The notes under the pieces: generated by a model
Seen by the model: only the letters and a program-made list of their open reading frames with translations
Database searches by the model: none
Told to the model about the DNA's origin: nothing
Made by a program: the position numbers and the translations under genes
NCBI GenBank assembly: GCA_030704615.1
Contig: CM060733.1
Location: 62,930,001 to 62,994,000, forward strand
DNA from: Takakia lepidozioides
Lineage: Eukaryota; Plantae; Bryophyta
DNA: 64,000 nt
Direction of reading: 5' to 3'
Part shown: in pieces, positions 764-58,217 of the stretch
Position numbering within the stretch: the stretch's first letter is position 1
How the letters are laid out: each line of letters begins with the position of its first letter

Positions 764-3297
764 ACTTGGCATGAGCCCACGGATAGCAAGCGGTATAATT
801 TGTTGCATGAGCACATGATAGTCATGTGATTTCATGCCTGACAACTTCTTCTTCACCACATGCTTTTTGAAAGCTGATGCGTAGCCTGTTGGCACTTTCA
901 AGTTCTGCACAATCTCCAGAAAGACTTGTAACTCAGCCTCAGTGAGGACATAAGGGGCAGGAGGCATAATTAACGTATCTACTCTGTCAAGATCACGTTG
1001 TAGCCACAATTCCGGGCGCATCCCAAGTAGCTCCAAATCACGGCAAACTTTCAATGTGTCTTTCTCACCAAAGATAGTTTTAATAATATTTTCAGCCAAG
1101 TTCTTCTCGCAATGCATTGCGTCAAACGTGTGGCGGATGAGGAGACCCTACAAAATGAACACATAAGCAATTGAGCATTTACTCATCACAATTTAAACAG
1201 AAAACGCAAAAATGTACACAGCCAATTTAAAGGCCATGAAGGAATTACCTCCCAATAAGGTAAGACATATAAAATTGACAATCGCTTAACTCCATGAGTT
1301 TTTGCTGGGTCTGTCCTGCTATCTGGCATCCCTCCGTTTTCCACCCATGCAGTGCGAGCTGTTGCAAGGTCCTTGATTGTGTTCCAGTCTGCGTTTTTGG
1401 AGGAGTTCCATGCTCAGTAGCGCCATTGAACATTCTTGACCTTCTATATGGATGATTGCGGGCCAAAAATCTTCGGTGGCCTAGGAAAACAATTTTTCCA
1501 CATGTGTGTAACTGCTGTGAAGTCACCCCGGGTCCACAAGCTGGACAACCAGCATAACCTTTTGTCACTTGACCTGAGAGCAAGCCATATGCAGGGTAGT
1601 CATGGATTGACCACATCAACACTGCCCTCAGTGTGAATTCGCGTTGACCACGAGGACGGGAAACATCATGAGCTGCAATCCCTCTCCATAGTTCTTCCAC
1701 TAGGGGCATTAGGTAAACATCTACGTAGTCCGAGGTAACAGACTCTTTACCAGGAATCAGTAGCGCTAACATGACAAAGAACTTTTTGGTCATTAACCAC
1801 AGAGCCAGATTGTAATTGACCAAGAGAATGGGCCATGTGCTCCAACTTGTGGATTGAGCTCCGTAGGGATTTACACCGTCTAAGGCCAATCCAAATCGCA
1901 GAGATTGTGGCTCTGCAGCAAAATCCGCAAATGTGGTGTCAATGTGTCTCCATGCTTTGCTATCAGCTGGATGTCGAACCAACCCATCCTGGCTCTTATG
2001 TCTGTCATGCCATGTCATGAGATTAGCGATCGATTTACATCGGTACATACGTTTCAACCTTGGAATGACAGGGAAGTGTCGCAATATTTTCTTGGGCACA
2101 CTTCCACGACCTGGAATGTAACGGGAACTGCGGCACACTGGGCAAATGTCTACATTCTCGTACTCCCCACGGAAGAGTACACAGGCATGAATCATCGTGT
2201 ACTGCAATCCCATCTTGGCAATCATGGTTTTTGCTTCATAGTGAGTTTTCGGCAATGAATTCTCTTTAGGCAAAAAACTCTTACGCAACAATCCCAGAAG
2301 CTCATCCACAAATGCATTGGTGCACTTGTGGGTAGTGCATGCGTTCAACAACGTCAAAGTTGCTTGCAGCCGGCTGATGGAGCACCCTTCAAAAAGTGGA
2401 CATTGCGACGCTCGAAAGAGTTTATCATACTCGAGATCAACGTGCAGGTGAGCATTCTCATCAAATTCATTATCTCCGGAATCGTTGAGATCATCATCAT
2501 GATCGGCAAATGTGTGATCGGTTCCACCATGAATGGGGTCCTCTCTGTTTGCATCTGCAAAGAGAAACGCTTCCTGCAATGCACGCTGCATTTCTACCTC
2601 CAATCCACCACTCTCATCTGCGTTCTCTGTGACATTGGGCTCCCGCTGTGCCACAGGGCCTTCGTCTTCATCATCTGAATATTCACATCCCTGCATCCCA
2701 ATAGTCATCTTGTGAGTGGACCAACAACGATGTGACACTTGTTCATATTATGACATAGGAGGCACGGTGACATTGCAGTGATGCAGTCATATTTACGTAT
2801 GTATCTTATGAATATACACCCAATCAAAACACGACATTTGTAACCATTGAAGTCATAGTTGCAGTCACTTACTTAGTCATATATGACTACGTGACTACAC
2901 ATGACCAATGAAAACACGACATGTGCATTAATTAAAGTGATAACGGAAGTGGCGTAGTCATAGTCACGTCTGTATCTTATGACTTCTTGACTACAATCAC
3001 CCAACGAAATGTCGACATGTGGAGAAGAGGATCGTTGCATTCAAAATTCAAACTAAAGTGCTGAAGGGAAAGTGACGATCTTACCGGAAGAGAACAGCGT
3101 TGGAGAAGAGGATCCCTCCCGTGTATCATGTAGTGATTCCTCACTGTTTCCAACAACAATACTTTTCCTCCATGACACTCATCGCAGTTGCATAGCATTT
3201 TTGTATGCCCATTCCTTGTGGCATAAGCTTCTTCCATTCGCCATAGATGGTCATCTATTCTACGCCTACGCATCCGTTCGCCACCTGCACTATACAT
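763..3297 (-). pseudogene. CACTA/En-Spm transposase (TnpD/Tnp2, Transposase_21 type), spliced, frameshifted and 3'-truncated
   Basis: ORF 2977-3297 has the transposase-associated motif CNCDEC...VRNHYMIHG. ORF 1245-2738 has IHAC...CPVCRSSRY, RHPADSKAW, LALDGVNPY, WPILLVNYNL, LMWSIHDYPAYG, GHRRFL. ORF 743-1117 has MHCEKN and LSGMKSHDYHVLMQQ. Homology ends near 763. Confidence 0.92.
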
Positions 3298-3877
3298 GCT
3301 TTGAACGTCACCCCTTCCCTCTTTGCATGCTACGCACAGTGCATTGTCTCTAGTTTTGCACTAGCTGCCAATGTGCTATTTCTATATCTATAGTATACTA
3401 TAAGTATCGTTTCTGAGTGTCCATGGTGAAGCGGAAGGTCTTCGAAGTGACAGTCCCTCTCACTGAGTACGAGAAGTTCCGAGAGCGCCGGATTGCTGCC
3501 ATAAAGGAGGTGGAAGCAACGTTCAAGCAGTCGATAGATGGGTGAGTTTAGTTCCTGACTTTGGATACCCACCCACTAAACTTGCAATTCGCCTTATCCT
3601 CTAACCTTCCTACAACGATCATAAGCTTCATAGCACAAATGGGGGCGAGTAGCTGCGACTTGTACAAACAGAGAGGCAAACAACATGCAGTGAGTGACGA
3701 TTAGGTTTGAGGAGGGTGTGTCATTAGGCGGGAGATGTCCGCCGTCATTCGTGGGCAGGCATTACGTCCTGGTAGGGTGCGGTTGTGGTTCAGCGTAGGC
3801 TTAAGAGTATTAGGGTATGTATGCTTGCATTTGTTTGTGATTGTTTGAGAGGGAGGTCATGGAGGTGTTTGTGCAGG

Positions 3878-5478
3878 CTTGCGGGAGCGAATCGCCCTCG
3901 CAAGCCACGCGCTCCAAAGGAAAAAGCTAGGGATCAAGGTCCTGCAAGGCAAAGTGCCAGACTGAAGACGATGAAGACTATGATTCTGCACGAGGGCTCT
4001 TCTGAGGACGATGAGGACGATCCACTCCTCCCACGCCAGTGCGAGGCGAGTGCGTCGTTGGCGGATGCCACGGCAAGCCGAGGAGAACATGCCTATGCTC
4101 ATGTCGCAGGACAAAAACGCCCATCGTCTACACTACGAACACCTTCTCCGTCTGTGAGTTATAGTTATTCACAATGACCATGATTCAAATTATGTATGTT
4201 TTTGGTAAAATCACGAAGAGATAGGGTATGGTAAGATCATGAAGAGATAGGGTATGTCTGTCAAGACAGGGAAGTTGGACAATGCAGGGGTCAGCCAATG
4301 CACAATCACAAATGATTTCCACTAGACAAGTTGACGTGCCAAAGGCATGATGTCAGGCCAATGTAGACTTCAGGTGTGTTCAAATTCTTTGCCCCATGAA
4401 ACCAACGTCCTGGTACTAAGCTACAATGACTACTTATAGAGATACTTGGGTTACTTATGCACCCAGAATATCAGTAAAACTTGGAGGGATACTTCTCATG
4501 GACCCATCAGGTTTGTCCATTTGAATTCTTGCTATGGATTTCAGGAACACCCCATACCTAAGAGGGCTCAAAAATGTACTGGGAGGACATCATTGGGCCA
4601 ATCAAATTTGGGAGATTTACTGCCCAAGATCATACTGAGTTTTGGTTAATCTTGTCTTTACAAATGATATGTGCTTCCAGTTTGTTTTGCCTAAATTCAA
4701 GGATTTGCTGCTTGCTGCCTATATGTATGTGTAATCACCCACATTGTACTGGGGGAATTTCTTTTCAGGGCAAGCACAAGCGCACTGGATCCACGATCCC
4801 TACTGCTAGCAATGGAGATGGCGCCACAAGAACGCAGGAGGTGGCCCTAACTCTCCCAACGTTGTGGGTTCTGTGCCACCAGTACCCCACCTTATTATGG
4901 TATGCCTCAGTACCCACAGTCTGGCACTCAGTATGGTCAGGGTCAATATGGTGCTCCTCCATATGGGCAGTATGGCCAGTATCCTCCTCCACCATATTTG
5001 CCACCCCCTAATAGCTATGGGGTGGCAGGCCACCGGAATATCCTCCTACTTATGGACAGTATGGCCAGTATGGTCCTCGGCCTTCTGGCCAACAGCCATG
5101 GCCACCAGTCCCTACTTGGCAGGATCATGCTTTGAATTCTCCTGAACGCACGGAGGTCTCTGAAGGAGGGGAGGGTGCCGTTTCAAAGAATGATAGAACC
5201 AATGCTTTAAGGAGGGCTAATAGCTCAGCCAAAATTGAAGCTGCCAAGGTCAAGGAAGAGAGAATAGCTGCAGGTCTTCCTCCCACGGTGATTTTGACGA
5301 ACCTCAAAGGAGCCCCGTATGGTCAGACCCGGAATGTATGGCACGCTGCCCTTAAAGGACAGGCTTATCGCAAGCTAGATTGTTCCCTTGCCATCAACAA
5401 CCAACCTGATGAAATTGTATACGAAATCAGAGATCACCTGGCTAAGCTATTTTCATATACGCCACACGAGTTAAAAGA
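3878..5478 (+). pseudogene. CACTA second gene (TnpA/Ptta-like) fragments, interrupted by the Penelope-like insertion
   Basis: Exon-like segments 3878-4155, 4769-5120 (P/Y/G/Q-rich) and 5132-5478 (GAPYG..W...LK...LDCS..NQ...I...L..LFSY). These resemble the N-terminus of plant En/Spm ORF2 proteins and lie next to the Tnp2 gene. Confidence 0.5.
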
Positions 5479-5489
5479 CTTCCCGGGCT

Positions 5490-7640
5490 ATGGAATGGAT
5501 AAGTCCTAAGGGTATGATAAAAGAAGCATTCTTGAATTTCGGACAGAATGACCTGGCTATGTTAACTGAGGAAGTGATGTTTGGATGGACATACCATAAA
5601 CAGAGTAGTACAGAGTACTATCTGCCTGCATCTACTTTTCGTGACTTTCACTTCCTACCTGATCTGATTGAATCTCCCCCTTGCCTCTGCAATACAGCCA
5701 AGAGGTTCAAGGCTTTTTGTGATGTGAATACTTTGGCTGAGATTCAAATAACTGATTCTGCCCCCATACAACATGTCAGAACTATGGATCTGAACATTAT
5801 AAGACATCCCAAGCTGAGAGAACTCTTCAGCCTAGGTATGAACCACGTTCCATTAAAAAAAACCTTAATAAAGGATGTTGTTATAGAGATAGCTTCTGCC
5901 TTCTCTAAAACATGTGACATTCTTCATGTGAACATTTCAGAACCCTGGATAGTAGAATGTTGTCAATGGTTGAAGATTACATGTTGGGACAGGCTGAAGA
6001 AAAAAGCCAGTTTGACACGGTGCAATTACTGTCATCATGAGGGTAACCCACTTGTCAAAAAAGAAGCTCGGGAGGAACTGGATTGGCTTCTTAAACACTT
6101 GTACATGTCTGGTCTTGATAAGGCTAACAACAACGTATGTTTTCTTTGTGTGAAGCACATCCGAACCCAAGCTTATCACCGACTTATGGGTAAGGATTTC
6201 AAACCATGCACCCAAAATGAGGTATGGTCATCACCTGATTCAGTCTTGGAAAGCCTGTTTACTGAGGTACAGAATCTGATCCCTGAAGTTGAGGTGGCTT
6301 TTTGTAGTCTTCCCTACATGATGGGAATATACAAGCTACACAAAAAAAAGTACCGTTGGATTACCAATGCACATAATTGTGTGTTCAGTGAAATTACTTG
6401 TCTTCTTACACGTGCCACTATGTTCCTACTACCCTTGGTCAAGGAATGGGCCTTAGACACCTACAAACAATTTTTCAAAGTGTCTACTGCCATGTATTGG
6501 ATTATAGACAGCATCACTGATTTCACTTTAAACCTCCCTGCAAAAATCTATGATGTGTTTGTGGCTGACATTACCCAATGCTATGAAAACATCCCTTTGG
6601 CAGGTGACGATAATCTGGGTGATGCTATTGAATACGTGATCAAAATTGCTTTCCAGCAATATCATGTAAACCACCCAAGGTCACATCACACCATTTGGAT
6701 CCAAACCAAAAACGGGATCTTCGGGAAGTGCAAGTGGAGTCTTTCTTCCCCAAAGAATGGTACTTGGATAGAGCTTCCTGAAGCCAAGTTGCTTCAGCTC
6801 CACAAGTGGTTGATGTCCCACTGCTTCGTAGCATTGGGTGACCGTGTTTGGCATCAAGTGTCAGGTATTCCTATGGGATTTTCGTGTTCACCATTATGGT
6901 GCAACATATATTTCCTTTCCTATGAGCTTAAATTTATCTTGAGACTGGCAGCTCTTGGACAATATCAATTGATGCCTAAGTTTCAATATGCTTTCAGATA
7001 TATAGATGACATCTGTTGGCTTAATATTGGCAATGCTATGTTATTCCTTAATCCTGACGCAGACAGGAGCAGCAGTAATCCATGGTGGATTTACCCATTG
7101 AATGTTGTGGAAATCAAACCTGAATTGTTGAGAACCAAGCCAGGATCCCAATATGAAGGTTTGGAAGCATGTTTTATGAACGTTCAGATCTCTGTGTTAA
7201 ACCCAGACTCAGGTGAGTTTCAATTTCAGAAATATGATAAGAGAAGACTCTTGCATTTCTCTTATACTCAGTATATCCAGTTCTTATCCAATAGACATGT
7301 GAATCAATCCTACAATGTAGTGATTTCACAAGCTTTTCCGATTTTGTATATTTCCAGCAGTGTTAATCTTGCTTGGAATGAATGCTATATTCTCATACAT
7401 ACCCTTGGGAGGAATGGTTTCAAAACCAAAAAACTAACCCGGATTTTGATAAGTTTCCTTGAGCAAGGCTCCTTCCTTGGTCTTTTCTTCCCTTTACAAG
7501 AGCTCATTGAAAGATTAAAAGGTACACTCTACACTCTTTCTTACATGATTGTATACCTTTTTCCTTTGCAGTTTTCCTTTTTTTTGACCATGGGAGATGT
7601 GAGTGTAGACCTTCATATCCATCTGGTTTTTCTAAAATAG
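5490..7640 (+). CDS. Penelope-like retroelement reverse transcriptase (Naiad/Chlamys-type architecture, no C-terminal GIY-YIG), apparently 5'-truncated
   Basis: Uninterrupted 716-aa ORF: PPCLC...HVRTMDLNII..KLRELFSLG, DKANNNVCFLC, YMMGIYKLHK, ADITQCYENIP, QVSGIPMGFSCSPLWCNIY, FRYIDDI, IYP, YDKRR...SN...YNVVISQ...NGF. In-frame stop at 5472, next to the CACTA junction. Confidence 0.9.
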   Translation: MEWISPKGMIKEAFLNFGQNDLAMLTEEVMFGWTYHKQSSTEYYLPASTFRDFHFLPDLIESPPCLCNTAKRFKAFCDVNTLAEIQITDSAPIQHVRTMDLNIIRHPKLRELFSLGMNHVPLKKTLIKDVVIEIASAFSKTCDILHVNISEPWIVECCQWLKITCWDRLKKKASLTRCNYCHHEGNPLVKKEAREELDWLLKHLYMSGLDKANNNVCFLCVKHIRTQAYHRLMGKDFKPCTQNEVWSSPDSVLESLFTEVQNLIPEVEVAFCSLPYMMGIYKLHKKKYRWITNAHNCVFSEITCLLTRATMFLLPLVKEWALDTYKQFFKVSTAMYWIIDSITDFTLNLPAKIYDVFVADITQCYENIPLAGDDNLGDAIEYVIKIAFQQYHVNHPRSHHTIWIQTKNGIFGKCKWSLSSPKNGTWIELPEAKLLQLHKWLMSHCFVALGDRVWHQVSGIPMGFSCSPLWCNIYFLSYELKFILRLAALGQYQLMPKFQYAFRYIDDICWLNIGNAMLFLNPDADRSSSNPWWIYPLNVVEIKPELLRTKPGSQYEGLEACFMNVQISVLNPDSGEFQFQKYDKRRLLHFSYTQYIQFLSNRHVNQSYNVVISQAFPILYISSSVNLAWNECYILIHTLGRNGFKTKKLTRILISFLEQGSFLGLFFPLQELIERLKGTLYTLSYMIVYLFPLQFSFFLTMGDVSVDLHIHLVFLK

Positions 7641-7745
7641 AAAAACCAGCGATGAAGACTACAAAGAGAAGGGAGAGTTTTTATGAGAATGGGTCTGGTA
7701 TGCACTCCCTTACGGGGTGAGTGCATACCACACTCATCCCATAAG
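7604..7745. other. Two stem-loops at and after the RT stop codon
   Basis: CTGGTTTTTCTA-AAA-TAGAAAAACCAG, extended by GTAG..CTTCAT/ATGAAGACTAC. Also TGGTATGCACTC-CCTTACGGGGT-GAGTGCATACCA, extended by TTATG..ATGGGT/ACTCAT..CATAA. Confidence 0.75.
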
Positions 7746-7778
7746 GGAATGCCATACCAGGGGCTGGCTGGTGGGATC

Positions 7779-9240
7779 CCTCTCTCTCCCTCTCTCTCTC
7801 CCTCTGTACATGGATCCTGTTGGTAACCTATTCCATAACCCAGAGGGTTTGGTACTAAGGTAATTTTTGACTAAACTATAATTAACTTTATGCTATCTTC
7901 ATCCATACCGGATATAGTTAATAATGGATGAATTCCATTAAATGTTAATTATGGTTATCATTTTTTACCTGGTTCCTTTGGATTATTAAGGTCATTTATA
8001 TCTAACCCTAATGAATGCCAGGTTCTGGTCATCGATTTTAGGATGTCATCCCTGCTGGATGACATGGCGATGACAACAGGGGAATATTCACCTTTCATTT
8101 CTTATTTTTCATCCCACATGGATGAAATCGCAATGGTTTGCCATATTTCCTCTCCTGCCATAAAACTTGCACGATACTGTGCGTTTTCTCTACGGGAGAT
8201 GAAGTGATGGTGTCAGAGGGATCTCTTAGCACGAATTTTATGATTTTGATGGCTATGGAGACGCTTCAATGTTGTTTACAAGTACTCTGGCAAGATTCCA
8301 GTCCTTTCTCATCTCCCTTGGGAGGCGTAACGGCGGCGGTGCTTCAATTCCCTCAGTATGGTGACCTATTCCCTTGGCGGGCAATCTACCTTAGGCTGCC
8401 CGACTGCTTGTAGATCCTCTCTGGATCATTAAGTTTCAGCACTACTCATAAAAACTCAGGGGGTTTCTTCACCTGTTAAAATGCGCATAGATTTCAAGCA
8501 AACCATTGCTTGTTTGTGCTGTTGATTGTCAAGTGCTTGGAGTGATGTCGAGTCCTCTTCCGCAATCGATTAAGGTTGTGGATAACCTTAATCCAGAGAG
8601 GATCTACAAGCAGTCGGGCAGCCTAAGGTAGATTGCCCGCCAAGGGAATAGGTCACCATACTGAGGGAATTGAAGCACCGCCGCCGTTACGCCTCCCAAG
8701 GGAGATGAGAACGGACTGGAATCTTGCCAGAGTACTTGTAAACAGCATTGAAGCGTCTCCATAGCCATCAAAATCATAAAATTCGTGCTAAGAGATCCCT
8801 CTGACACCATCACTTCATCTCCCGTAGAGAAAACGCACAGTATCGTGCAAGTTTTATGGCAGGAGAGGAAATATGGCAAACCATTGCGATTTCATCCATG
8901 TGGGATGAAAAATAAGAAATGGAAGGTGAATATTCCCCTGTTGTCATCGCCATGTCATCCAGCAGGGATGACATCCTAAAATCGATGACCAGAACCTGGC
9001 ATTCATTAGGATTAGATATAAATGACCTTAATAATCCAAAGGAACCAGGTAAAAAATGATAACCATAATTAACATTTAATGGAATTCATCCATTATTAAC
9101 TATATCCGGTATGGATGAAGATAGCATAAAGTTAATTATAGTTTAGTCAAAAATTACCTTAGTACCAAACCCTCTGGGTTATGGAATAGGTTACCAACAG
9201 GATCCATGTACAGAGGGAGAGAGAGAGGGAGAGAGAGGGA
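7779..9240. repeat. Near-perfect large inverted repeat (arms about 7779-8426 and 8591-9240, loop about 165 nt)
   Basis: The arms are reverse complements with about 4 mismatches in about 650 bp. The same 91-aa ORF appears on both strands (8138-8413 +, 8604-8879 -). Confidence 0.97.
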
Positions 9241-10109
9241 CAGATCAGGAAACAAAAAAAAACAAAAAAAAAAAGATGGGAGGGGAGTGACTGAGCAACA
9301 GCTGCTCAGTCACCCCCCCCCCCCCCCCCCCCCCAACCCATTTTTTTCATTGTTGCCCCCTCTCTCCCTCTGTCTCCCTCTTCGGAATTGGCTGGTTGTA
9401 TCAGTGTTCTTTTCATGATTTTCCATCTATACCAGATGGACTCTAAACAGTGTTTTCACCCACCTTATAAAGGTTTTCTATCCATACCGGAAGAATCTCC
9501 TGGGTGGACACTAAAATACCTCTAAAAAGGACCTATAATTTTTCATTCCTCTTTTATTGACTTTCATCTATACCAGATGCTAGAGAATGAAAAATTACCT
9601 CCGTAGGGGTTGTGACACTGGCATCCTATCTATAATTTTTCCATCCAGGCCGGATGAAAAATACCAGGATATGAATTCGTTTTATTCCTCCTTTATGCCT
9701 TTTTTTCCATACTAGATGAGGCTTTCTCTTAAGGGATGATGAAATACCTGTTAGCATGAGAAACCGATGCCCTGGATGATGTGTACTGCTTTTTTATCCT
9801 GCTGATGGACCTCCTCCAAATAAATGAACCTATTAATTTTTCATCTGAACCGGATGAAAAAAACAGCTTATGATGGCCCTGGAGAATTGTTTAATTATCC
9901 TTAATTATTGCTAATTAAGGAGTGAAACCCTAACCCCTACCCTATAATCTACTATTTAAACCTAGCTAACGGATGACATCCGTCGGGTTTTTGAGTTAAA
10001 GGGTGTTGATTATTCATCCTCCACGGATGAAAAATTGGGCTTTGCCCTAGGTGTCTCTCCCGCCGTCAGCTGCACTCCTCGTGCTGCTGTGCTCGCGAGT
10101 TGAGAGTTA

Positions 10110-12980
10110 TGGCGTCTGAGCTCTGCTGCTTCGTGCCCATGCCGGATGAGCTCCTGGGGATGCGCAATGGCGGCGTCTTGTCTCTTCTCACAGGCGGGAG
10201 AACCCGCTGTGATGGCATCGTCCCTTTCCCTCCTCTGGCTTTTATGTTTCGCAGCGGCGCTTGGGTGGGGAAGTATATCTCTCTCTCTCCCTTCTTAAAC
10301 CTAGCATTTGTATGCTTCGCTTCTCCTTAGCTGTGCTGGAGGTGGCTTGCTGGTGGCGATGGCGCAGAGTTATCTTCCCCAATCGCTTAAGGTGCTTTTG
10401 GTGATTAGGGTTCCTTTTACTTCATGTCTTTGTCTCTTGTTTTTGGGGTTCTTAGTTGACATCGATGACAAGTGTAGGGGTCTGTGATTCACCTGGGGTT
10501 CCACAATCCTCACTAACCCATTGGTTTTTGTGGGGGCTTGTGATGGGACCAGGTGAGGATCCCTACCTACTTTGAATTCTCTTGAGCTTGCAGATAAGGA
10601 TGTGTGCAAAAGGAACATATTGCTGCTGCCTGCAGCCCCGATTTCGGCCCGCTGGCTCCCGGTTTGACATGATGATGCTTGCCTTTTGACCTATCTTTTG
10701 CTGATGCTGATGGAGCATTTCGGCCTGGCAGCTTTGTCTCATGTAGCACAGCATGTGAATCCTACCCTGTCTTTGAATCTTTGACAGCTTTGCCTGTGGA
10801 TTTTTAGACTAGGTTCCTTTGTTTTGGGCTTAAAAGAGGATTGATGGTGTAAGGGTAAAGGCATCAGTGGCTGTTTGGCTCTAAGGATGAGGAGGTCTGG
10901 TTTTTGTTAAAGAAGACAGCCTGATAAGGCAATGATAGGCCGTTTTCAGACCTGGATTTGTTGTGGAATGGAGCATAGTGAGGTTCTATTTGCAAAACAT
11001 GGCATTAGCCTTCTGTGAAACAGTGACGGTAAGTTCTAAAGGACTCTGGCCAGTGATTAGTTACTTTATTTTGCCATATGAACAGCCACCTGCATTGTAT
11101 GATTTATCTTGGCCAAGAGGACTTGGTCTTGGGCACTCAAATTGTATGTGTGTCCATATCTGGATGTTGTGACAGGGCCGGCCTTTCTTCCATGCCAAAA
11201 TGCCTTACATGATGCATATCTTGGGGCAACTGTACATGATGTAGAATGAAGTCGTAGTCAGTCTTGTCATGCCCAAAGTGTTCACTTGGTTGCATGTTTG
11301 GAGTCCGATTTACTGCAGGATCGGCCAGCAAGAGTCCTATGTGCACAGGTCCTGAATATGTATAATGACAGGTTGTTCTTACATACCCAGAAGGCCTAGC
11401 ACGATGCATGCTTTGGGGTGCTTACATTTGGCCAAATGTGAAGCTGCAATATGGCTTGCCATGCCCAAGAAGTGTACTTGGTGGCAAGCCCGAAGTGTAA
11501 TTAATTGCCTGCTGCCGATGTGAACACTCCCTGAATGTGTTGTAGGGCAGGCTGTTCTTACCTACTTTGCATAATGCTTGTCTTGGATCACCTCAAGGTA
11601 CTTGTGTATACATATCTTGGATCTGTAATGTGGCAAGATGTTCTTATATGCCCATGATATCTTGCATGGTGCATATCTTATGGATAACTATGGATGATAT
11701 AATCTGAGGCTGCAATCTAACTTATATTGTGCAAGAGGGTCACTTGGGTACATGACAGGAATCTGATTATGAACATACCCGCCCTCCCACCCTATTTTAT
11801 CATGACTGAAGGGTGGCGTCACTTGGTGTGTTATGACAAGACTGGAAATGTTAGATGGTGCCCTGTCATGGGGCTGTTTATGTCTTTAATTGACAATGAC
11901 CCTTGTTGGTCTTGTCCATGTCTTGACATGAATATCTTCCCACTCTCTCCCTCTCTCTTATTAACTTTTTCTACCCCCTCTTTCCCTCTGTGGTTTTTAT
12001 TTTTTTGTGAGGAGCACGAAAGAGAGGGAAGATATTCATGTCATGTCAAGACATAGACAAGACTTTTAAAGTCATTGTCAGAAAAGGACATAGCAGCCTC
12101 CTTAGAAGGCACTATCTAACATCTCCGTTCACACATAACATCCAATTTGATTGAATCATGAAGACTTCAGGGTATCTGAAATCTCTGGGTGGGAGGGTGG
12201 GAATTGTAAGATATTCATCATAGAAAGAAAAAAATTCCATCACCATCAAGACAGACTGGGTTTCATATTCCATAGAGCAAAGTAATTCCATCTCTCAGCC
12301 ATATTGAGATATATCTGCCACTTAGCAAGATATGTTCCCAAGAACAGCTGGAAAGTTTTAAAAGAAACCATGTCTTTTAAACAAACATCCTCAAGAGCAT
12401 TTGCATAGTGGTTAGCAAAACAAACAATGCATTCATAGATCGTATTTGAACTTATCAGCAGCAGGCCCAGGCCTGAAGTGTTTGCTTCAGGGCTTTATCC
12501 ACATTATGCTAAAGTACAAAACAGATAGGCTTCCATAAGGCAGCTTTTAGGTCCGGGGTACCAGTACCTAATAGTTATAAGTGTGATTGCCCCATTGTTC
12601 CTGGTTCAAACACTATAACTATGTAGCAGGTTATGTTCCCAAAATGATTGGCAGCATTTAGTGAGGATGCGTCGGGTAGGTAACAAACCTTCACACTTGC
12701 TATCGATGTCATACATACAATCTAAAGCAAGCATATGCAGGGAACAAAGCATTAAACCACCAAGACCTTGAAGGCTTGTGGAAGTGGCGAAGCCTGCGAC
12801 ATGGTGTCCAAGACGTGCATTCAAACAAGTGCAAATAGATTGCTTTGCTGAAAAGAATGAGGAGTTTATCAAGTGAGAGAGACTCCCTGAAAACCATGCA
12901 AGTGCTGCAGCTTCATCAATGAGCATTCAAGAGTTCAGCTAGCAACCAAATTGATTGCTTCGCAGAAAAAAAGAAGTAGC
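10110..12980. repeat. Old, diverged large inverted repeat centred near 11941-12026
   Basis: Collinear reverse-complement blocks: 11910-11940/12027-12063, 11848-11900/12070-12122, 11778-11792/12186-12201, 10650-10730/12465-12565, 10457-10515/12658-12711, 10370-10415/12740-12785, 10141-10170/12910-12945. Confidence 0.8.
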
Positions 12981-12984
12981 TACC

Positions 12985-13775
12985 AGTAAAGGAGTTGAAG
13001 ACCCAGCCGCACATGCGCATGCAAAGCCTGGTAATTAGGCCTGGATTTCAGATGCCAGGCTGCATAGCCTTCAATGTGCATGTCCAGAAACATCAAAACA
13101 CCCTGAATGCATTTAATTCCAGCCGCATTTCCAGTGTAAAGACATAGCCGCCAATGCACATGGCAATTAGGCCTGGAATCAGGCTGTAAAGTCTTCATAA
13201 GGCCTCACCATAAGCATCAAATGCTTCAGATTCCTGCAGTAAAAGCACTTAGCAGCCCCCATTCACACCAGCAGAAGCTCATGCAATCAGGTGTGAAGAC
13301 ATAGCCGCCAATGCACATGCCGAGACCAGCAATTAGGCCTGGAATCAGGCTCAAATGCTTCGGACTCCTGCAGTAAAAGCACCTAGCAGCCACCATTCGC
13401 ACTAGCAGAAGCTCATGTAATCAGGTATGAAGACATAGCCGCCAAGGCACATGCCGAGACCAGCAATTAAGTCTGGAATTATGCTGCCAGGCTGCAAAGC
13501 CCTCATTACGCCTCTCCATAAGCACCAAATGCCTTGGATTTATGGAGTATAAGCACCTAGCCGCCATCATTCACACCAGCAGAAGCTTGAATGCAATCTA
13601 GTAGCTCAGGTATGAAGACATAGCCGCCAAAGCATATGTTGAGACCATCAATTAAACCTGGAATTCAGCTGCCAGGCTGCAAAGCCTTCATTACGCTTCT
13701 CCATAAGCATCATGTCAAACGACATGAATTCATGCAGCAGGAGCACTTAGCCGTCACCATTCACTCCAACACAAG
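12985..13775 (+). repeat. Tandem repeat, about 130-190 bp units (GAAGACATAGCCGCCAA core), 4-5 copies
   Basis: The core recurs at about 13140, 13295, 13430 and 13615. More degenerate, roughly 190-bp units also occur at 11170-11690. Confidence 0.85.
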
Positions 13776-13916
13776 CTTAAGCACGAGCTTCGTGCTTTTT
13801 CTTAGGTTTAGCAAAGTGATAAGACCTCACTCCACGCGACTTCATCCAGCGTGGATGAAATCGTGTATAACCGATAACATTAATAGGCATTCATCTCTGA
13901 TATCATCCTGTATGGA

Positions 13917-16622
13917 TGTCGCGCACCTCACTTCGGTAAGCTCCCCTTCAAGTCATAGTTACTCACTTCGATGCGCGCGCCTGACTCCCAACCTGGCCGC
14001 CCGGGCCAACTTGGAGCTTCGGCTGCTCACCGGGGCATAACGGTCCCCCTTCGCTTCCCACTAAATCCTCCACCTATTTGGGACTAGGAGAATTCCCTTT
14101 GGTAGATGGCAGTCCGGAACAGCTCCCCACTCTTTGGTCGCTTTCCGGCTCGCTCGCTTACTCACTAGTTTTTGGTCACCAACGGGCTTGCACCGTTCTC
14201 GGGGTTACTACTCCCTATATATACTTCTGTAGCTGTCCGCGGGGGTTTCACAACCAGCCATGCCATTTTATGGCGAACCACCACGAAAACCCTCGACTCC
14301 CGGTGATGAGTCGCGGTGAGTCTTGGCCCGCTCACCACGGCCCCTATGGACCGTGATGAGTCCCAAGACTCCCCACGACTCCCACCACGAGGTCTCCGCC
14401 CCCATGGTGAGTCCTATGCCACCCCCACTAAGTCCCGCTAAGCTACCACCACCCCTTGTGGAGCCACCCCCACCGCAACCCGGTGTGCGGGGCTCCACCT
14501 AGTGAGCGCCTCCGCTTCCCTGAGTGCCTTGGGCACTCAAGGGTGCTTCAGCCCCCCATACCTATCGCTCCGCTGCCCCCACCACAGGGGCAGCCCCTCA
14601 TGTGTCCCGACCCCCTGCCCTCAATGCAAAGGGCCGCGACACACACCCCTACCAACAGGGAGTCGATGTCCTCATCGACTTGTTCATTTTGTAGAAACGA
14701 ACATCCAAGTTGTGGCGTCCCACATCAAGGAGTTTGTTTCCGTACCATGGCGTCCCATGGCAAAGAACCAAACCCCACACTTGACTCTACTCTCCACTAG
14801 CTAGTTCGGCCGACTTCCTCCAAGTCCCGGCCAAGGGTGGAGCCTCTCCAGCTCCTCCCAGTGCACTCTTCTTGGCCTACTTCAAGGCCAAGGAACGATC
14901 CTCCCCGAGGATCGAATCGCCTTACTGCAACAACATTGCTTGCGACCGCTCATGATGCCGCTTTTGGCATCACCTTGAGCAAGGGTTCACCTCAAACCCT
15001 CTTTGACTAGGAAGATAACCTTGAACAAACCGTGCGCCCCAATCACTACAATTGGGTCCGCCTTGGAATGCTGGCCTGAGGTACGGGAACACGCCGAAGC
15101 CGCACTACGGCTTCGTCCCGAGGCTACACGATTATAGTACGTGAACGGAAGCACGTAGCTTCCGCGTTAACCCGCACTACAAGGCAACCCCCTCGGTAGC
15201 GCAGTTATAGTACGCGCACGCGCCAGGTGCGCACTAGCACGTGAACTCCCAAAGAAGGCGCAAGTTTCCTTGCCCCTTGGATGGGGGTCACCCGATTTCG
15301 GCACTACGCAAACACACGATTAACCCAATTTACCTCTCCCACTTTTATAAGCTAGCATGCATTCTACACACTAGCCAACCACACCATGCATCACCATTCC
15401 AAACAAAATAGGACGCACCGAATTTGGAACCCATTTCCTTTATAACAAATTTTTGTACAATACAAGTTTTTGCAATCGGATTCCTAAGCTAGCTAAGCCA
15501 GGCTAAGCATGCATTTCCTCCCCCACGCTCCAAGGTTGATGTCCCCATCAACGCTTCTTCCGCTTTTTAGGTCGCCCTTCGAAAGCTGCGACCGCCTCAG
15601 ATGCGTTTCCCATTTCTGAGGCACGCACCCAAGATGCCTCCACATGATGATAACCCTTCCATTTGACGAGATACTCCGTTTCTTGGTTCTTGAACCTCCT
15701 TGACTTAAGTATTGCCTCCACCTCGTACTCAGGTTCATTTTCATGATCCAACAGCATAGGTGGCGGACGCAACACTTGATGCCGATTCGGACGCGCTTCA
15801 TCTTTGAAGTAAGGCTTCAAAAAGGAGACATGGAATACTGGGTGCACCTTGCTGTTTGCCGACAGCTCCAATTCATACACATCCTCATTCATAACCTTCC
15901 GAATGCGAAAGGGTCCCGCATACGGAGGTACGAACTTCGGACTCACTTCCGGAGGTAGTCAAAAATTCTTGATGTTCAACTAGACCTCCGTGCCTGCCTC
16001 AAACTTCACTTCCCTCCGCTTCCGATTCGCCTGCATTTCATACCGTTTCCTAGCTTTGGCAATGTTGTACTTTGCGAGCTTCAACAAACGCTCGCGTTCT
16101 TCCAGTACTGCCGCTACTGCCGGTTCCTCAACGTCCTGGGCGGCCCAACTTGTCGGCACCAGAGGTGCTTTTCCATAGACCAATACGAAAGGGGAAACTC
16201 CCGTTGCGGAGTGTTCTGTGTTATTATAACAAAACTCTGCCGCGTCTAAGTGTTCCACCCAGTCTGTTTGGTCTGCCGACACGTAATTCCGCAAGATCTG
16301 CTTCACTACGGAATTCACCCTTTCTGTTTGGCCATCAGTCGTAGGTCGGAAGGCGGTGCTCATCTTCAGCCTCGTCCCCATCTTCTTCCAAAGTGCTCTC
16401 CAGAATTTACTCGTAAACTTTGGATCGCGGTCCGAGACAATATCCTTCGGGACTCCATGATGCTTTAAGACGTGGGCGAAGTAAAGTCGCCCTGTCTCCT
16501 GCGCCGTTGCCGTCTCCTTGGTGGGGATGAAATGGCCCATTTTACTGAACCTATCTACCACCACCATGATTGCATCAAATCCTTTTGACAGCGGCATAGC
16601 AGTCATGAAATCCATCGAGACG
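13917..16622 (-). mobile_element. Truncated Ty3/gypsy chromovirus copy: 3' LTR (13917-15513), PPT, integrase C-terminus and chromodomain
   Basis: TG...CA LTR highly similar to 31795-33393. PPT (minus strand TGGGGGAGGAAA) at 15514-15525. Integrase motifs SMDF...SDRD...QTERVN; chromodomain YEVEAILK..EYLVKWKGY..ASW. Confidence 0.95.
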
Positions 16623-18912: not shown

Positions 18913-20028
18913 GCCTCTCATTTTAAGATAAGAGGGTCTTCAATGGGCACGTGCGATGTGGCCGGTGGGCCCCGCGCACGGACGCCCGGCTCCCCAGCAC
19001 CCCGCTCGCCCCGCCCGCCGCTGCGCGCGGTCGCCCAGCCGCGGGCGCGGCTGCAGCAACCGCGCCCGCGCCCCGTCCGCCGCGCGGCCAGTCCCCCGCC
19101 CATGAGTCCGCTGCCCTCCAGTCTGCCAATCCGCTGCTGGCCAGTCGGCTGCCCAGCAGTCTGCCAGTCCGCCGGTCCGCTACCCAGCAGTCCGCTAGTC
19201 CGCCAGTCCGCCCGCCAGTCCGATGACGGCGCAGGATCGCCACCGTCCATTCCCATAACCCATCCGAGCCCTCCATTTTTAGGGCTGCGAAAATGGCAAT
19301 GATCTTCCCACCAAATCCCAGCCGCTCTCTATTGATGGCTGTTTGTTGTCCGATGTTGCGGTAGGCGTTTCCATGCACGCGACTGTTCCTCTTTTGCGCG
19401 CGATGTTCATGATGATGATGAAGCGTGTGCTTGAACATGAGAGGACTGTCTGGGCACTACAGCCACCATCGTGCATATGCTTCCACTATTTTTGCCTTCT
19501 TGTTGTGCTTTCGGGAACCTTCGTTTTATGGTTTGGTTCTATGTCATAAATATGGAAAATGCGGACATCTGTCGCCGATAACGTCCTCTGCTTGTGATCC
19601 GTCATGATACGTTTAGCCCCTTTGTACTGCATCCCTCATGAGAGCCTTCACAAGTTTAGTTCGTTAAAGGAACCCATGGATAACATGGGCGCGAAAATGG
19701 TGGAAGCGTATGCACATGGGGGCGTGTATTGCAGATTTCGTATCGGACGATGGGACTGTTTATGTGACCAAGTATAGCGGCTTGCATCCGTCGTGCATAA
19801 GTTGTGGAAAAGGGTGGAGAATCTGAAGAAACCCAGCTTTGTGATGGATCCACATGGTATTATATAAGGGATGGCAGCAAAAAAAAACAATTCGAGTCGT
19901 CACGGAACACCATCCAGTCGTAAGGTCCTCAAACATCCACGCGCACCTGCTGAATGCAGATGTCTGAGCCACGACGGGAGATGTCCGAGACAATTGCATC
20001 TGCAAATGCGCGTGGATGTTTGAGGTCC

Positions 20029-20680
20029 GTTGTGTCGCGAGTCTGTTCACAGTGGGTCCGCTGGCCCGTCAGTGCTCCGGATATTCCCCTTATCGCGTGC
20101 ATAACAGTCAGTTTGGAGGCGGTCTGCTGGAAGTCCGTCTGTTGGGATAACAGTCTGTTGCACTTGTGAATTTGTTAGTCTGTTGTGTCGGAAGTCTGTT
20201 GCACTAAGTCTGTTTGACTTCTTATTTTCCCTTCGGTCAGTATTTTGGCTTGTTCTCCCGCCAGTCTGGCGAAATGTCCGTCTGCTGGACATTTCTCCTC
20301 TATGGATATCAGTCTGTTGGACTGTGCATGCATCAGTCTGTTGTGTCGCGAGTCTGTTCACAGTGGGTCCGCTGGCCCGTCAGTGCTCCGGATATTCCCC
20401 TTATCGCGTGCATAACAGTCAGTTTGGAAGCGGTCTGCTGGAAGTCCGTCTGTTGGGATATCAGTCTGTTGCACTTGTGAATTTGTCAGTCTGTTATGTC
20501 GGAAGTCTGTTGCACTAAGTCTGTTTGACTTCTTATTTTTCCTCTGGTCAGTCTTTTGGCTTGTTCTCCCGCCAGTCTGGCGAAACGTCCGTCTGCTGGA
20601 CAGTTCTCCTCTATGGATATCAGTCTGTTGGACCGTGCATGCATCAGTCTGTTGTGCCACGAGTCTGTTCGCAATGGGTG
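20029..20680 (+). repeat. 311-bp tandem duplication (2 copies plus a partial third) inside the MULE
   Basis: GTTGTGTCGCGAGTCTGTTCACAGTGGG at 20029 and 20340; a variant at about 20650. Confidence 0.95.
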
Positions 20681-29896: not shown

Positions 29897-31794
29897 GCCC
29901 TATACAGTACAAAGGACACGCTTCTGAACATACAAGAAACGCGCCACAGTACAAGACACGATCGACAACGTGCCAGGAGAACAGTGCGCACGTTCGCGGC
30001 TGCTGGCAAGTGGCAGGCGGCAAGGATGCAGGTTTGAATTGCAGCCCTAAAAATGGAGGGCTCGGATGGGTTATGGGAATGGACGGTGGAGATCCTGCGC
30101 CGTCATCAGACTGGATGGCAGGGGACTGGCCAGCGGACTGGCGGGCAGACTGGCGGACTGGCAGACTGCTGGGCAGCGGACTGGCCAGCAGTGGACTGGC
30201 GGACTGGCAGACTGCTGGGCAGCCGACTGGCGAGCAGCGGACTGGCCGACTGGAGGGCAGCGGACTCATGGGCGGGGGACTGGCCGCGCGGCGGACGGGG
30301 GCGCGGGCGCGGTTGCTGCAGCCGCGCCCGTGGCAGGGCGACTGCGCGCAGCGGCGGGTGGGGCGGGCGGGGTGCTGGGGAGCCGGGCGTCCGTGCGCGG
30401 GGCCCACCAGCCACATCGCACGTGCCCATTGAAGACCCTATTATCTTAAGATGAGAGGCCCATAAACCAGTGCGGAAATAACGACGGTGGCACTAAAACT
30501 TACAAGCCGGCATTAGTAAGTGCAAGGCCTAGGAGCAAGTAAATTATTAATAATTCCAGGAAAAAAATCTGCAACCAGCCAAGCTTAAATAGAGGGCTCC
30601 TCGTTGCACTAAGGAGGCTGATCGTGATGAAGAAAGAGGCGATGGAGAAACTGAGAGAAGGACGTAGGGAGAAAGGTTGAGGGAGATCAGAGTACCAGGG
30701 TGAAAGGCCTGGTATCAAAGGCATTACGAGATCGTGGGTCCGTAGGTTCATTGGTGGAGACACGAGACAGAGTGCTCACTTGAAGTTTTAAGCTTACTTT
30801 TAAGTCTTGGAGATGATGGAGACAGAAGGAGAGAACATGGATTAAGGTCGAGAGGATTTAGCAAAGCGATTAGTGAGATGCGTGTACAGTGTACAGACCA
30901 TGTTGATACTTAGCGGCCATGATGGTGAGCCATGTGATATAAATGAGATCGGCAGTATTTACAAACTGGAGTATGTATAGTTGAACCTGATTAAGAAAGT
31001 AGATTGGGAAATATTTGAACTGTAAGATCTGTTGAGGGCACAATCATTGTGGGCAATTATGCCAGGACACCTTGTAAGCGTAATGAGATAGGCACTTAGA
31101 GAGAGAGGATCCATGGGAAAGAAGACCAGAAGAAGGTAGTTCAGTGGGATCACAAGAAGAACTGATCAGGGCAGTCCCTGGAATCACGAGATGGGAATGC
31201 AAGGTAGAAAGAGAGACCTGCGTAGCATGTGCAAAGGATAAAGGTGGATGAAGGCCACTGCCGTAACGGATAGGTGGAATGTGTGTTAAGAAATGAACCG
31301 TGCGCGTGGTGCACCAAAGCAACGAGATGCTGCAGGCAGACGCCCTACGTCGGGTCAAGATATCTTTTCTGAGCATTTGCCATGTTGAAGTGAGGGAAGT
31401 GACGTGATGTCAACGAAACAAACAAGTAGGATAACAGTCCGGTCTAGGCTAGGTGTCATGATGTTTTCCTGCTTCCGCTGCGGCTCATGTAGCATTGAAA
31501 CTGGACTGACGGGTTGTCTGATCAAGAGGGAACGTATAGATTTTCCCTGGGTGGTGAAACAAGGCCCCCATTTTTACATTACACAACCTTTGTAATTGAT
31601 GAAGAAGAGAGCGGATTTGGGAGATTGAGTGCGAGTGGAGGTATCCAATACATGTTTCTGGGAGAGGGGGGATGATGATGATAAGGGAGAAGAGGAGAAT
31701 GTGGCGTAGGGAAAGACTTGAGTTTGAGGAGGGTTTTGGAAAGTGTCGGATAGCAGCTGGACGGGAGTCCAAATGTTGGGATGTGTTGCGTGTG

Positions 31795-57627: not shown

Positions 57628-58045
57628 GCTGGATGGAAAAAATCGGCGCCAAATTTCCATCCAACGGATGAAGTATGACGCAACGAGGCCATCCCTCCGC
57701 CCGAGTCGTTCTCATCCAGGAGACGCCGGATGGAAATCCGGCGCCGCATTTCCATCTTGCAGGTAATTCGGAGCGCGGCAGGATGGAAATCCGGCGCCGA
57801 ATTTCCATCCGCCAGGTAATTCGGAGCGCGGCCGGATGGAAAAACGGCGCCGAATTTCCATCCTGGAGGTAATTCGGAGCGCGGCCGGATGGAAATCCGG
57901 CGCCGAATTTCCATCCCAGAGGTAATTCGGAGCGCGGCCGGATGGAAAAAAGGCGCCGAATTTCCATCCAACAGGTAACACGGAGAGAAGCCGGATGGGA
58001 AACCGGCGCCGAATTTCCATCCTGCAGGTAATTCGGTCCACCTCA
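57628..58045. repeat. About 53-bp tandem array of the palindrome GGATGGAAAWYCGGCGCCGAATTTCCATCC
   Basis: About 7 units directly visible. Confidence 0.95.
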
Positions 58046-58217
58046 TCGATGGAAAACCGGCAACGAATTTGTCTTTAGCGGACCAGAATGGTGGGAATAA
58101 CGTGCCAAATGTGGCCTGTAGGCAAAAAACGCCAAGTTAAGTGTGTAACCAGACAAAAAAACGCGAAAAAACTTGATGCAACGACTAAAAATTGTTGAAG
58201 AATTGCCGATACGGGCT

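Follow-up and report, generated by a model that had tools for sequence, protein, structure and literature searches.

The window (the whole stretch of DNA analysed) consists of 64,000 nt of Takakia lepidozioides DNA (GCA_030704615.1, CM060733.1, positions 62,930,001–62,994,000, forward strand). It contains a reverse transcriptase (RT) gene of a Penelope-like element (PLE), followed by the conserved non-coding block CNB1, tract 1, a young variable region (Z′), an inverted copy, a small older palindrome, an older tract–Z–CNB2–tail series and an older inverted module:

5409–7640, + strand: RT gene of an endonuclease-less PLE, delimited by homology and an open frame at 5490–7640 (716 aa)
7687–7776, + strand: CNB1, an RNA-like stem-loop with the closing stem CTGGTA...TACCAG, which nhmmer shows to be conserved in 26 related loci (also examined by alignments and folds)
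7777–7805, + strand: CT-rich tract 1, with which the left arm of the 650-bp inverted repeat begins on its outer side
7806–8590, + strand: Z′, the variable region behind tract 1, a young copy collinear in + orientation with 9382–10412
8591–9240, − strand: secondary inverted copy of 7777–8426 (tract and first 620 nt of Z′), 99.4% identical
9202–9393, no strand: small diverged palindrome, reading (AG)n, A-rich, G-rich, 5-nt loop, C-rich, T-rich, (CT)n
9357–9381, + strand: CT-rich tract 2, direct repeat of tract 1
9382–10423, + strand: Z, the older, diverged counterpart of Z′ behind tract 2; dyad sites at 9477, 9640, 9840 and 10013
10424–10599, + strand: CNB2, the second conserved non-coding block (TGACATCGAT.ACAAGT ... 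ACACCTG ... ATGGG.C.AGGTGAGG)
10600–11959, + strand: tail of the older + copy, ending CT-rich (11938–11958)
11775–12204, no strand: centre of an old tail-to-tail palindrome, with core arms 11837–11959 and 12008–12133 and a CT-rich spacer
12008–13916, − strand: older module with part of the non-coding region in inverted orientation, containing CNB2 (−) at 12657–12720 and an array at 12972–13783, cut by an LTR
13917–16622, + strand: truncated LTR retrotransposon (5′ LTR 13917–14641) that interrupts the inverted copy and lies outside the PLE

Homology of the RT gene to its relatives starts near 5409, and an in-frame stop codon (5472–5474) lies just 5′ of the ATG at 5490. As there is no ORF1 5′ of the RT, the window copy is 5′-truncated; the gene, called intact in an earlier sequence-only reading, does hold an RT-like ORF of 716 aa but is not fully intact. 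The ORF has 114 homologues with 43–50% identity (46–47% for the best matches), including a Selaginella protein (E = 3e-80), and its sole Pfam match is a sub-threshold one to RVT_1 (E = 0.022). In agreement with that reading, Pfam finds no endonuclease domain, including an N-terminal GIY-YIG, in the RT ORF or in the ORFs upstream. The relatives' RTs are about 700 aa long and have the same N-terminus as the window RT; with GIY-YIG missing as well, only an endonuclease-less (EN-less) offshoot of Naiad/Chlamys therefore fits. Both cysteines of the CxC motif N-terminal to the RT (C65-x-C67) are invariant across 28 sequences, as is D210-K211-A212, the DK(A) in place of DKG; these motifs are Naiad/Chlamys features (PMC8557442). 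About 99 aa separate D360 of motif A from G459–P461 of motif B, which, as a matter of spacing alone, is sufficient for an insertion-in-fingers domain (IFD). The AF2 model of the RT has a pLDDT of 77, and the 18 best Foldseek matches in the PDB are all telomerase RTs (E from 1e-8 to 6e-4), ahead of group II intron RTs. By motifs and fold, the RT is of the TERT-like, endonuclease-less Naiad/Chlamys (‘PLE-X’-like) kind. The RT tree, built from the relatives only and containing no reference PLE, TERT or LINE sequences, is poorly resolved.

EN-less PLE-X families of the Naiad/Chlamys clade are known from Chara and Selaginella, with BlastP matches in mosses; they are reported to have canonical hammerheads and, at the N-terminus, an extension that is set off by an intron and contains CxCX1-8C (Craig et al. 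2021, PMC8557442). The window family resembles them in the CxC upstream of the RT, DK(A) for DKG, the lack of GIY-YIG, the green-lineage host, extended non-coding stretches that contain tandem repeats, and joints made of simple repeats. However, it has a CNB1 stem-loop with a tract, its relatives carry a separate, conserved ORF1 of about 430–600 aa instead of the intron-separated extension, and it lacks an Rfam hammerhead where PLE-X has canonical ones. No hammerhead ribozyme was matched by Rfam at 3000–16000 (E ≤ 1), in the whole window (gathering score) or in eight related loci, in line with the earlier failure to find a canonical hammerhead core. The Athena/Coprina PLEs are EN-minus, telomere-attached elements with reverse-complement telomeric repeats and an adjacent hammerhead (Gladyshev and Arkhipova 2007, as cited in PMC8557442). 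They are similar in having no endonuclease and in carrying reverse-complement repeats of the DNA to which they attach (compare relative L061 below), and they differ from the window copy, whose tract is CT-rich, whose site is internal and which has no adjacent hammerhead. The CxC and DKA motifs of the window RT also point to Naiad/Chlamys rather than to Coprina.

The relatives, identified in metagenome contigs, are two-ORF elements (ORF1 and RT) of 5.4–6.8 kb with a fixed order behind the RT: the CNB1 stem-loop, a simple-repeat tract, variable Z, CNB2 and a tail with a tract-like end. According to nhmmer, CNB1 lies 3′ of the RT in 26 loci, with CNB2 405–1821 bp beyond; CNB2 occurs solely behind RTs of this PLE family, and the variable DNA between tract and CNB2 comprises 0.4–1.8 kb. 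The closing stem of CNB1 has two compensatory pairs, and the stem-loop is followed by a G-rich run (GGGG...GGTGGGA) adjoining the tract. The tract is (CT)n, (TTC)n or (CCCTAAA)n according to lineage, and the 3′ end of the unit agrees with its type: TTC in L004 and L065, CT in L001 and the window, telomeric in L061. In L061, a close relative (53% core identity), (CCCTAAA)n is found directly after CNB1, 5′ of the RT and, in degenerate form, near the 3′ end; no telomeric array occurs near the window PLE, where the tract is CT. Direct terminal repeats measure at least 1.25 kb in L001 and at least 1.6 kb in L004, other relatives form tandem or circular contigs with a period of 5392–6608 bp, and tract–Z–CNB2 modules are stacked in L005, L058 and L065, with tracts at the module joints. 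Pseudo-LTRs and partial tandems are thus present in the relatives, whereas the window has stacked and inverted partial modules only, and no direct pseudo-LTR was found for its copy. These contigs derive from short-read metagenomes that cannot show large inverted repeats, so that the absence of such repeats is uninformative.

Within the 64-kb window, the relatives' non-coding DNA matches only 7691–7805 and 10392–10564 (+) and 12658–12711 (−); CNB1 and CNB2 alone are matched, and region Z has no detectable similarity to the relatives. The distance from CNB1 to CNB2 is 2636 bp, or 1060 bp with 7806–9381 removed, which is inside the relatives' range. The window retains the relatives' CNB1...CNB2 order, and the DNA 3′ of the RT therefore derives from the PLE and not from a separate fold-back transposon. 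The family's conserved blocks, in the family's order, uphold the earlier view that this DNA belongs with the same kind of retroelement as the RT. The question of an independent fold-back element or a short RT unit has a divided answer: the relatives' coding module does end, in stem-loop and tract, 25–450 bp past the stop codon, but the unit continues for 1.3–2.9 kb of non-coding DNA. As noted previously, the region is non-coding, the ORFs of at least 60 aa within 7640–13916 having no Pfam match.

The near-perfect inverted repeat with 650-bp arms recognised earlier is confirmed at 7777–8426 and 8591–9240, with sharp ends, 646 of 650 nt identical (99.4%; four differences, all substitutions, no indels) and a loop of 164 nt. 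The repeat, which takes in the CT tract, begins at the very end of CNB1; complementarity is lost abruptly at 7776/9241, and the flanks of the repeat are reverse complements, mirroring each other because the tract is part of the repeat. They share no direct repeat, and no direct target-site duplication flanks the inverted repeat. Z′ is made up of the left arm (7806–8426) and the loop (8427–8590), has dyad sites at 7898, 8045 and 8108, and stops about 35–45 nt before the expected start of CNB2. The left arm and loop are collinear with the older copy at 9382–10412 in + orientation only (z = 7.7; for the loop alone, z = 5.6 forward and 0.3 reversed), which makes the right arm the secondary, inverted one.

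In the small palindrome at 9202–9393, the (AG)n also belongs to the right arm and the (CT)n to tract 2. The diverged third copy of the arm proposed before was recovered from 9356 onwards (local alignment, z = 5.8 against shuffles, with a score twice that of the best control region). The tail of the older + copy contains degenerate direct repeats of about 190 bp at 11126–11769; by analogy with the pseudo-LTR ends in L001, L004 and L065, its end at 11959 is probably the unit's 3′ end. There it meets, tail to tail, the inverted copy at 12008–13916, which has dyads at 13841 and 13902 and a tandem array of 134–157-bp units at 12972–13783, matching the tandem repeats reported earlier. A diverged inverted repeat spanning 2.9 kb, as originally suggested, is reduced to three short blocks (two alignments and the dyads), with one further block out of order; 11775–11949 aligns with 12018–12204 at 68% identity (E = 5e-18) and 10374–10516 with 12658–12784 at 61% (E = 0.006). 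The alignment of such short blocks tentatively suggests an old palindrome. The LTR start at 13917 is corroborated by 94–95% identity to 31795–34494 and 38029–38755.

The description of some 6.3 kb as almost entirely self-complementary was overstated. A self dot-plot (30 nt, 70%) shows three palindromes only (7765–9252, 9202–9393 and 11837–12133), which account for about 2 kb of the 6.3 kb. Two small hairpins were correctly placed, at 7623–7649 and 7695–7760, and the recurring dyad is real: CATCC-N5-GGATG has nine sites against 0.47 expected, eight of them within 8047–13918. CT-rich tracts lie at the junctions (7777–7805, 9212–9244 as AG, 9357–9381 and 11938–11958). The pile has at least three layers of different age, with identities of 99.4%, roughly 63–80% and 61–68%.

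The stretch is probably a pile of PLE-derived DNA rather than the candidate new system proposed earlier. Copies of the non-coding tail region are stacked at CT-rich simple repeats and at least two fold-backs are present, which is mostly known Penelope-element behaviour. In the relatives it is normal for a long non-coding region to follow the RT, for pseudo-LTRs and stacks of partial copies to occur and for joints to consist of simple repeats, and Craig et al. (2021) described these features for PLEs (PMC8557442). Nor is this one large retroelement: there are at least three age layers, and the RT copy is 5′-truncated and lacks ORF1. A rod-like RNA from the region found no support.

It is very improbable that the palindromic DNA came from a fold-back or MITE-like DNA transposon of independent origin, with long TIRs and dyad binding sites, which inserted behind the RT by chance. 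The dyad TTCATCC-N5-GGATGAA does recur in the arms and beyond, resembling subterminal transposase sites. However, this candidate is largely refuted by the missing target-site duplication, the start of the repeat exactly at the end of conserved CNB1, the collinearity of left arm and loop with a second copy running into CNB2, a block specific to this RT family, and a dyad array at the matching position in L061, with its telomeric tract. It is improbable too that the 650-bp repeat arose in assembly, for instance from a chimeric long read folded back on itself, with the remainder as described. Short-loop palindromes are a known long-read artefact and PLE structures often cause assembly trouble (Craig et al., PMC8557442), but the unique 164-nt loop continues the native sequence, the arms differ by four substitutions and no indels, and the sharp boundaries coincide with landmarks that have a biological meaning.

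Less remote, though still rather unlikely, is an origin of the fold-backs in the element's own RT, which would have switched strands or snapped back while synthesising cDNA, in a single retrotransposition event or in several; the palindromes would then be a by-product of the way in which this family copies itself. Every module is part of a PLE and joined at the family's own tract, the inverted arm comes to its end precisely at CNB1, with its stable hairpin and G-run, and complex tandem and inverted insertions are known for PLEs (PMC8557442). The right-arm end at the CNB1/tract boundary and the loop end about 35–45 nt 5′ of CNB2 fit an RT-made switch more naturally than random breakage. Against this, the palindromes differ so greatly in age (99.4%, about 63–80% and 61–68%) that no single event made them, the inverted arm is not a natural unit 3′ end, and a perfect 650-bp hairpin in the transcript would invite silencing. 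The window copy otherwise resembles canonical PLE insertions in being 5′-truncated, in its stack of partial non-coding ends, in having repeats of both orientations and in its microsatellite junctions. In the canonical inverted form, however, copies stand head to head at the 5′ end, whereas here the copies of either inverted pair meet by their tails, and the younger pair is cut at a non-terminal point. Because this orientation is the opposite of the head-to-head pattern of twin priming, host replication or repair is somewhat more likely than the RT to have made the fold-backs. Of the earlier proposal of snap-back self-priming, a strand-switch origin fits the anatomy of the 650-bp repeat, but nothing singles out the RT over host repair as the maker of the fold-backs.

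Template-switch fold-back duplications, produced in replication or repair, have two arms and a single-copy spacer that continues the native sequence of one arm. The young repeat is similar in its spacer, in junctions at or near microhomology and in the adjoining polypurine/polypyrimidine tract, and differs in that its arm ends coincide with element landmarks. The reading preferred here is a pile of PLE copies whose fold-back duplications lie at CT/AG tracts and were made by host repair; as a whole it can be given a probability of about 0.5. New copies and 5′-truncated fragments of the family would land at CT/AG tracts, including each element's own, probably because the CU-rich 3′ end of the RNA pairs with (AG)n at an exposed DNA 3′ end, in the way that PLEs attaching to telomeres pair with telomeric repeats; modules would thereby become stacked at tracts. 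The inverted copies would have formed later and separately, since the three palindromes differ in age, through fold-back strand switches beside polypurine/polypyrimidine tracts, where breakage followed by host replication or repair may have produced them.

Transcription of the 650-bp hairpin, should it occur, would probably give rise to double-stranded RNA directed against the non-coding region of this same family. A bolder and doubtful possibility is that the family picks its landing sites in a telomerase-like manner, the RNA stem-loop and tract pairing with exposed DNA 3′ ends that carry the complementary repeat; exchange of the tract among (CCCTAAA)n, (CT)n and (TTC)n would have moved close relatives between telomeres and internal microsatellites, and strand switching by the same RT would have made the fold-backs. 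If true, this tract pairing would explain how EN-less Chlamys-type PLEs integrate.

The stretch at 5478-13916, which the sequence-only reading had put forward as a candidate new system (a Penelope-like element, PLE, reverse transcriptase followed by a 6-kb serial fold-back region), turns out to be of an already known kind. It is an elaborate but ordinary PLE pile-up, belonging to a little-described plant subfamily. The reverse transcriptase (RT) frame at 5490-7640 was confirmed as real and encodes 716 aa. Its sole Pfam match is to RVT_1, below threshold (E=0.022); no endonuclease domain was found in this search, in agreement with the earlier claim. The RT has 114 homologues; the best, about 700 aa long and 43-50% identical, are located almost entirely on metagenome contigs of 2-10 kb, and partial matches were found to one moss (Ceratodon) protein and one Selaginella protein. 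The motifs C65-x-C67 and D210-K211-A212 are invariant in an alignment of 28 RT sequences. A CxC motif and DK(A) replacing DKG are diagnostic of the Naiad/Chlamys clade (Craig et al. 2021, PMC8557442), and both are present in the window RT. Endonuclease-less ‘PLE-X’ relatives have been described from Selaginella and Chara, and BlastP also gave matches in mosses (Craig et al. 2021, PMC8557442). Searches of the PDB by sequence and by profile with the window RT gave nothing meaningful. The 18 best PDB matches of its AlphaFold model (pLDDT 77) are all telomerase RTs; PLE RTs and telomerase RTs are sister groups, a relationship that the predicted structure fits.

The RT had been called intact. It is of PLE type and has a long open frame, but the gene is nearly, not fully, intact, since the similarity to relatives reaches back to about 5409, and an in-frame stop (5472-5474) lies ahead of the 5490 ATG. 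On homologue contigs, an ORF1 is conserved directly upstream of the RT; it is about 430-600 aa long, and the relatives share 31-81% identity in it. No ORF1 was found in the window by tblastn or with a profile from seven relatives' ORF1s, and the window copy is thus 5′-truncated at about the RT start. The DNA just upstream of the RT (4574-5509) contains a P/Q/Y/G-rich low-complexity ORF lacking a Pfam match; a 125-aa ORF (5132-5509), with neither homologues nor a Pfam match, overlaps the RT start in a different frame. These ORFs may be what is left of a lineage-specific ORF1, or may have no relation to the element.

The structure of a complete unit can be read from the relatives, designated here by the L numbers of their metagenome contig loci. 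Direct terminal repeats measure 1585 bp in L004 and at least 1255 bp in L001, where the contig end cuts the repeat; contigs of other relatives are tandem or circular assemblies with a unit length of 5392-6608 bp. Each unit therefore has 1.3-2.9 kb of non-coding DNA 3′ of the RT. Fragments of Replitron_HUH and DDE_Tnp_4 (Harbinger-type) genes, found at 9000-9230 of L001 and on a JGI contig, both carrying RT relatives, indicate that these contigs are eukaryotic and rich in transposable elements; their source is probably a moss or an alga.

The non-coding DNA of the relatives matches the whole 64-kb window solely at a first conserved block (CNB1) and at both sites of a second (CNB2). A simple-repeat tract follows CNB1, and variable DNA, region Z, separates the tract from CNB2; Z of the window has no detectable similarity to Z of the relatives. 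In the window the order is RT, CNB1, CT tract 1, a young copy of Z (Z′), its inverted copy, a small palindrome, CT tract 2, Z, CNB2 and a tail.

Features downstream of the RT, with the corresponding blocks of relatives
7687-7805, CNB1 plus tract
7777-7805, CT tract 1
7806-8590, region Z′
8591-9240, inverted copy
9357-9381, CT tract 2
9382-10423, region Z
10424-10599, plus strand, CNB2 (profile match)
11938-11958, CT-rich end of the tail of the CNB2 module
11775-11949 / 12018-12204, central palindrome (68%, E=5e-18)
12657-12720, minus strand, partial CNB2 (profile match, E=7e-5)
12972-13783, tandem repeats
L004 5762-5876, L061 4652-4765, L064 3055-3166 and L012 1426-1552, CNB1 plus tract
L004 6699-6859, L012 2092-2255 and L064 3969-4093, CNB2

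In the relatives, CNB1 follows the stop codon as a stem-loop closed by CTGGTA...TACCAG, with a G-rich run and then, at once, the tract. The closing stem has compensatory changes at two pairs, and single-sequence folds concur in a long irregular hairpin. In 26 loci, many of them absent from its building set, the CNB1 profile has a match 3′ of the RT; it matches the window once (7687-7788). As the earlier failure to find a hammerhead core had indicated, Rfam returned no hammerhead and no other family in the window or in eight related loci, only sub-threshold miRNA-like matches on hairpins. The tract is (CT)n in the window, L001 and L007-L012, (TTC)n in L004, L058 and L064, and (CCCTAAA)n, the plant telomeric repeat, in L061. 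Its type varies among close relatives, and the 3′ end of the unit has bases of the same type; a swap of tract may be a mechanism of retargeting.

CNB2 lies 405-1821 bp past CNB1 in the relatives and is strongly conserved, with the consensus TGACATCGAT.ACAAGT ... ACACCTG ... ATGGG.C.AGGTGAGG, a near-invariant 17-mer, TGACATCGATAACAAGT, and an ACACCTG / CAGGTG pair. Its ATGGG.ACAG/GTGAGG (the slash marking the junction) looks like a start codon with a 5′ splice donor. The idea that CNB2 is a first coding exon spliced to ORF1 is not supported: the sole clear acceptor, in L012, would break the reading frame, and ORF1 of other relatives begins with an ATG of its own. A role as a 5′-UTR intron donor is possible. 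Unit ends, where the terminal repeats stop, are located 430-1130 bp past CNB2 and have tract-like bases: TTC-like in L004 and L065, the latter joined to another module's (TTC)n tract. In L001 these bases are CT-like; in L061, about 480 bp past CNB2, they are telomere-like. A short telomere-type motif, CCCTAAACCC, also occurs at 635-645 of the window, at the edge of a neighbouring element near the window start.

The near-perfect inverted repeat with 650-bp arms was borne out: 7777-8426 and 8591-9240 are identical at 646 of 650 positions, with a 164-nt loop, sharp inner and outer ends and four differences, all substitutions. The proposed diverged third copy of the arm also held up, the left arm aligning to DNA after tract 2 with a score of 59.5, where shuffled sequences scored 29.0 ± 5.2 and no other region of the window exceeded 29.8. 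Taken with the loop, the GC-rich part of the arm matches 10041-10393 in plus orientation, and the match continues over the boundary between arm and loop (z=7.7); for the loop by itself against Z, z is 5.6 in the forward and 0.3 in the reverse orientation. Because the alignment is collinear across this boundary, left arm and loop constitute one uninterrupted native copy of Z. The right arm is a secondary inverted copy, joined at 8590/8591, about 35-45 nt before the expected CNB2 start. CNB1 and CNB2 lie 2636 bp apart in the window; taking out 7806-9381 reduces this to 1060 bp, within the range of the relatives. An ordinary transposon insertion is excluded for this repeat, which takes in the CT tract, begins exactly at the end of CNB1 and has mirror-image flanks with no direct duplication.

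The description of the whole 6.3 kb as almost entirely self-complementary did not survive a self dot-plot of 7600-14000 (70% identity, 30-nt windows), which showed only three palindromes (7765-9252, 9202-9393 and 11837-12133), about 2 kb in total. Beyond the plus-strand tail lies an inverted module consisting of the central palindrome, the minus-strand CNB2, the tandem array, confirmed as proposed, and dyads at 13841 and 13902. In outline, then, the diverged 2.9-kb inverted repeat exists, but its support consists of short blocks only; one is out of order, and for this reason a strictly collinear old palindrome was rejected. The recurring dyad, CATCC-N5-GGATG, is genuine (9 sites against 0.47 expected, 8 of them in the downstream region). 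About ten AACTTTG-N5-CAAAGTT dyads, spaced by ~60 bp, occupy in L061 (4912-5672) the same post-tract position as the TTCATCC-N5-GGATGAA dyads of the window; seven other relatives have no such arrays, which are not a general family feature of Z. Pfam matched none of the ORFs of 60 aa or more in 7640-13916, consistent with the claimed lack of coding sequence. The module is cut at 13917 by an LTR insertion, as had been stated. This LTR retrotransposon family (LTRs of ~725 bp, TG...CA ends) has two copies in the window, one breaking off at 16622 (13917-16622) and a complete one of ~7 kb at 31795-38755 (LTRs 97.7% identical). Elsewhere, satellite-like tandem arrays occur at 46883-50730 (units of about 100-110 bp, inverted block at 50173-50730) and 57595-59243 (units of ~96 bp, 85-88% identity). 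An inverted pair (19288-18913 and 30041-30459; ~420 bp, 86% identity, 11 kb apart), near a tandem duplication of ~310 bp (95%) at 20025-20679, may mark a further transposon bounded by terminal inverted repeats.

The downstream DNA is layered and of PLE origin. The palindromes differ in age, with identities of 99.4% (650-nt repeat), about 63-80% (9202-9393) and 61-68% (old pair), and so represent separate events. Copies and fragments of the subfamily would have been added at their own kind of tract, the likely route being that the RNA, CU-rich at its 3′ end, pairs with (AG)n at an exposed end of DNA. Athena/Coprina elements attach by pairing with telomeric repeats (PMC8557442), and the proposed pairing is modelled on them by analogy. 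This route is supported by L061, which has a telomeric tract and an RT as close to that of the window (53% core identity) as those of CT-tract relatives; the RT tree is too poorly resolved for ordering the tract switches. Stacked tract-Z-CNB2 modules are present in L005, L058 and L065.

Inverted copies would additionally require a fold-back strand switch. Both inverted pairs in the window are tail to tail; the product of twin priming would be head to head. The origin preferred for the inverted copies is host replication or repair acting at fragile polypurine/polypyrimidine tracts, with strand switching by the RT a close second, favoured by arm ends that coincide with CNB1 and fall near CNB2. 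The young repeat could also be an assembly artefact, though the native sequence of the loop and the substitution-only differences between the arms speak against this. The relatives are uninformative on fold-back frequency, since their short-read contigs cannot show large inverted repeats.

These data define how a plant PLE subfamily, so far poorly described, is built, with two ORFs, no nuclease and no hammerhead, and provide annotators with CNB1 and CNB2 as markers for its protein-free fragments. Small RNAs against the family could plausibly arise from the young 650-bp hairpin, which is made of the element's own regulatory region. The most worthwhile part of the result is the relation of CNB1 to its tract: among close relatives, the type of the tract (CT, TTC or telomeric) changes jointly with the bases found at the unit 3′ end, which suggests how nuclease-less PLEs locate 3′ ends, a question left open by Craig et al. 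2021 (PMC8557442).
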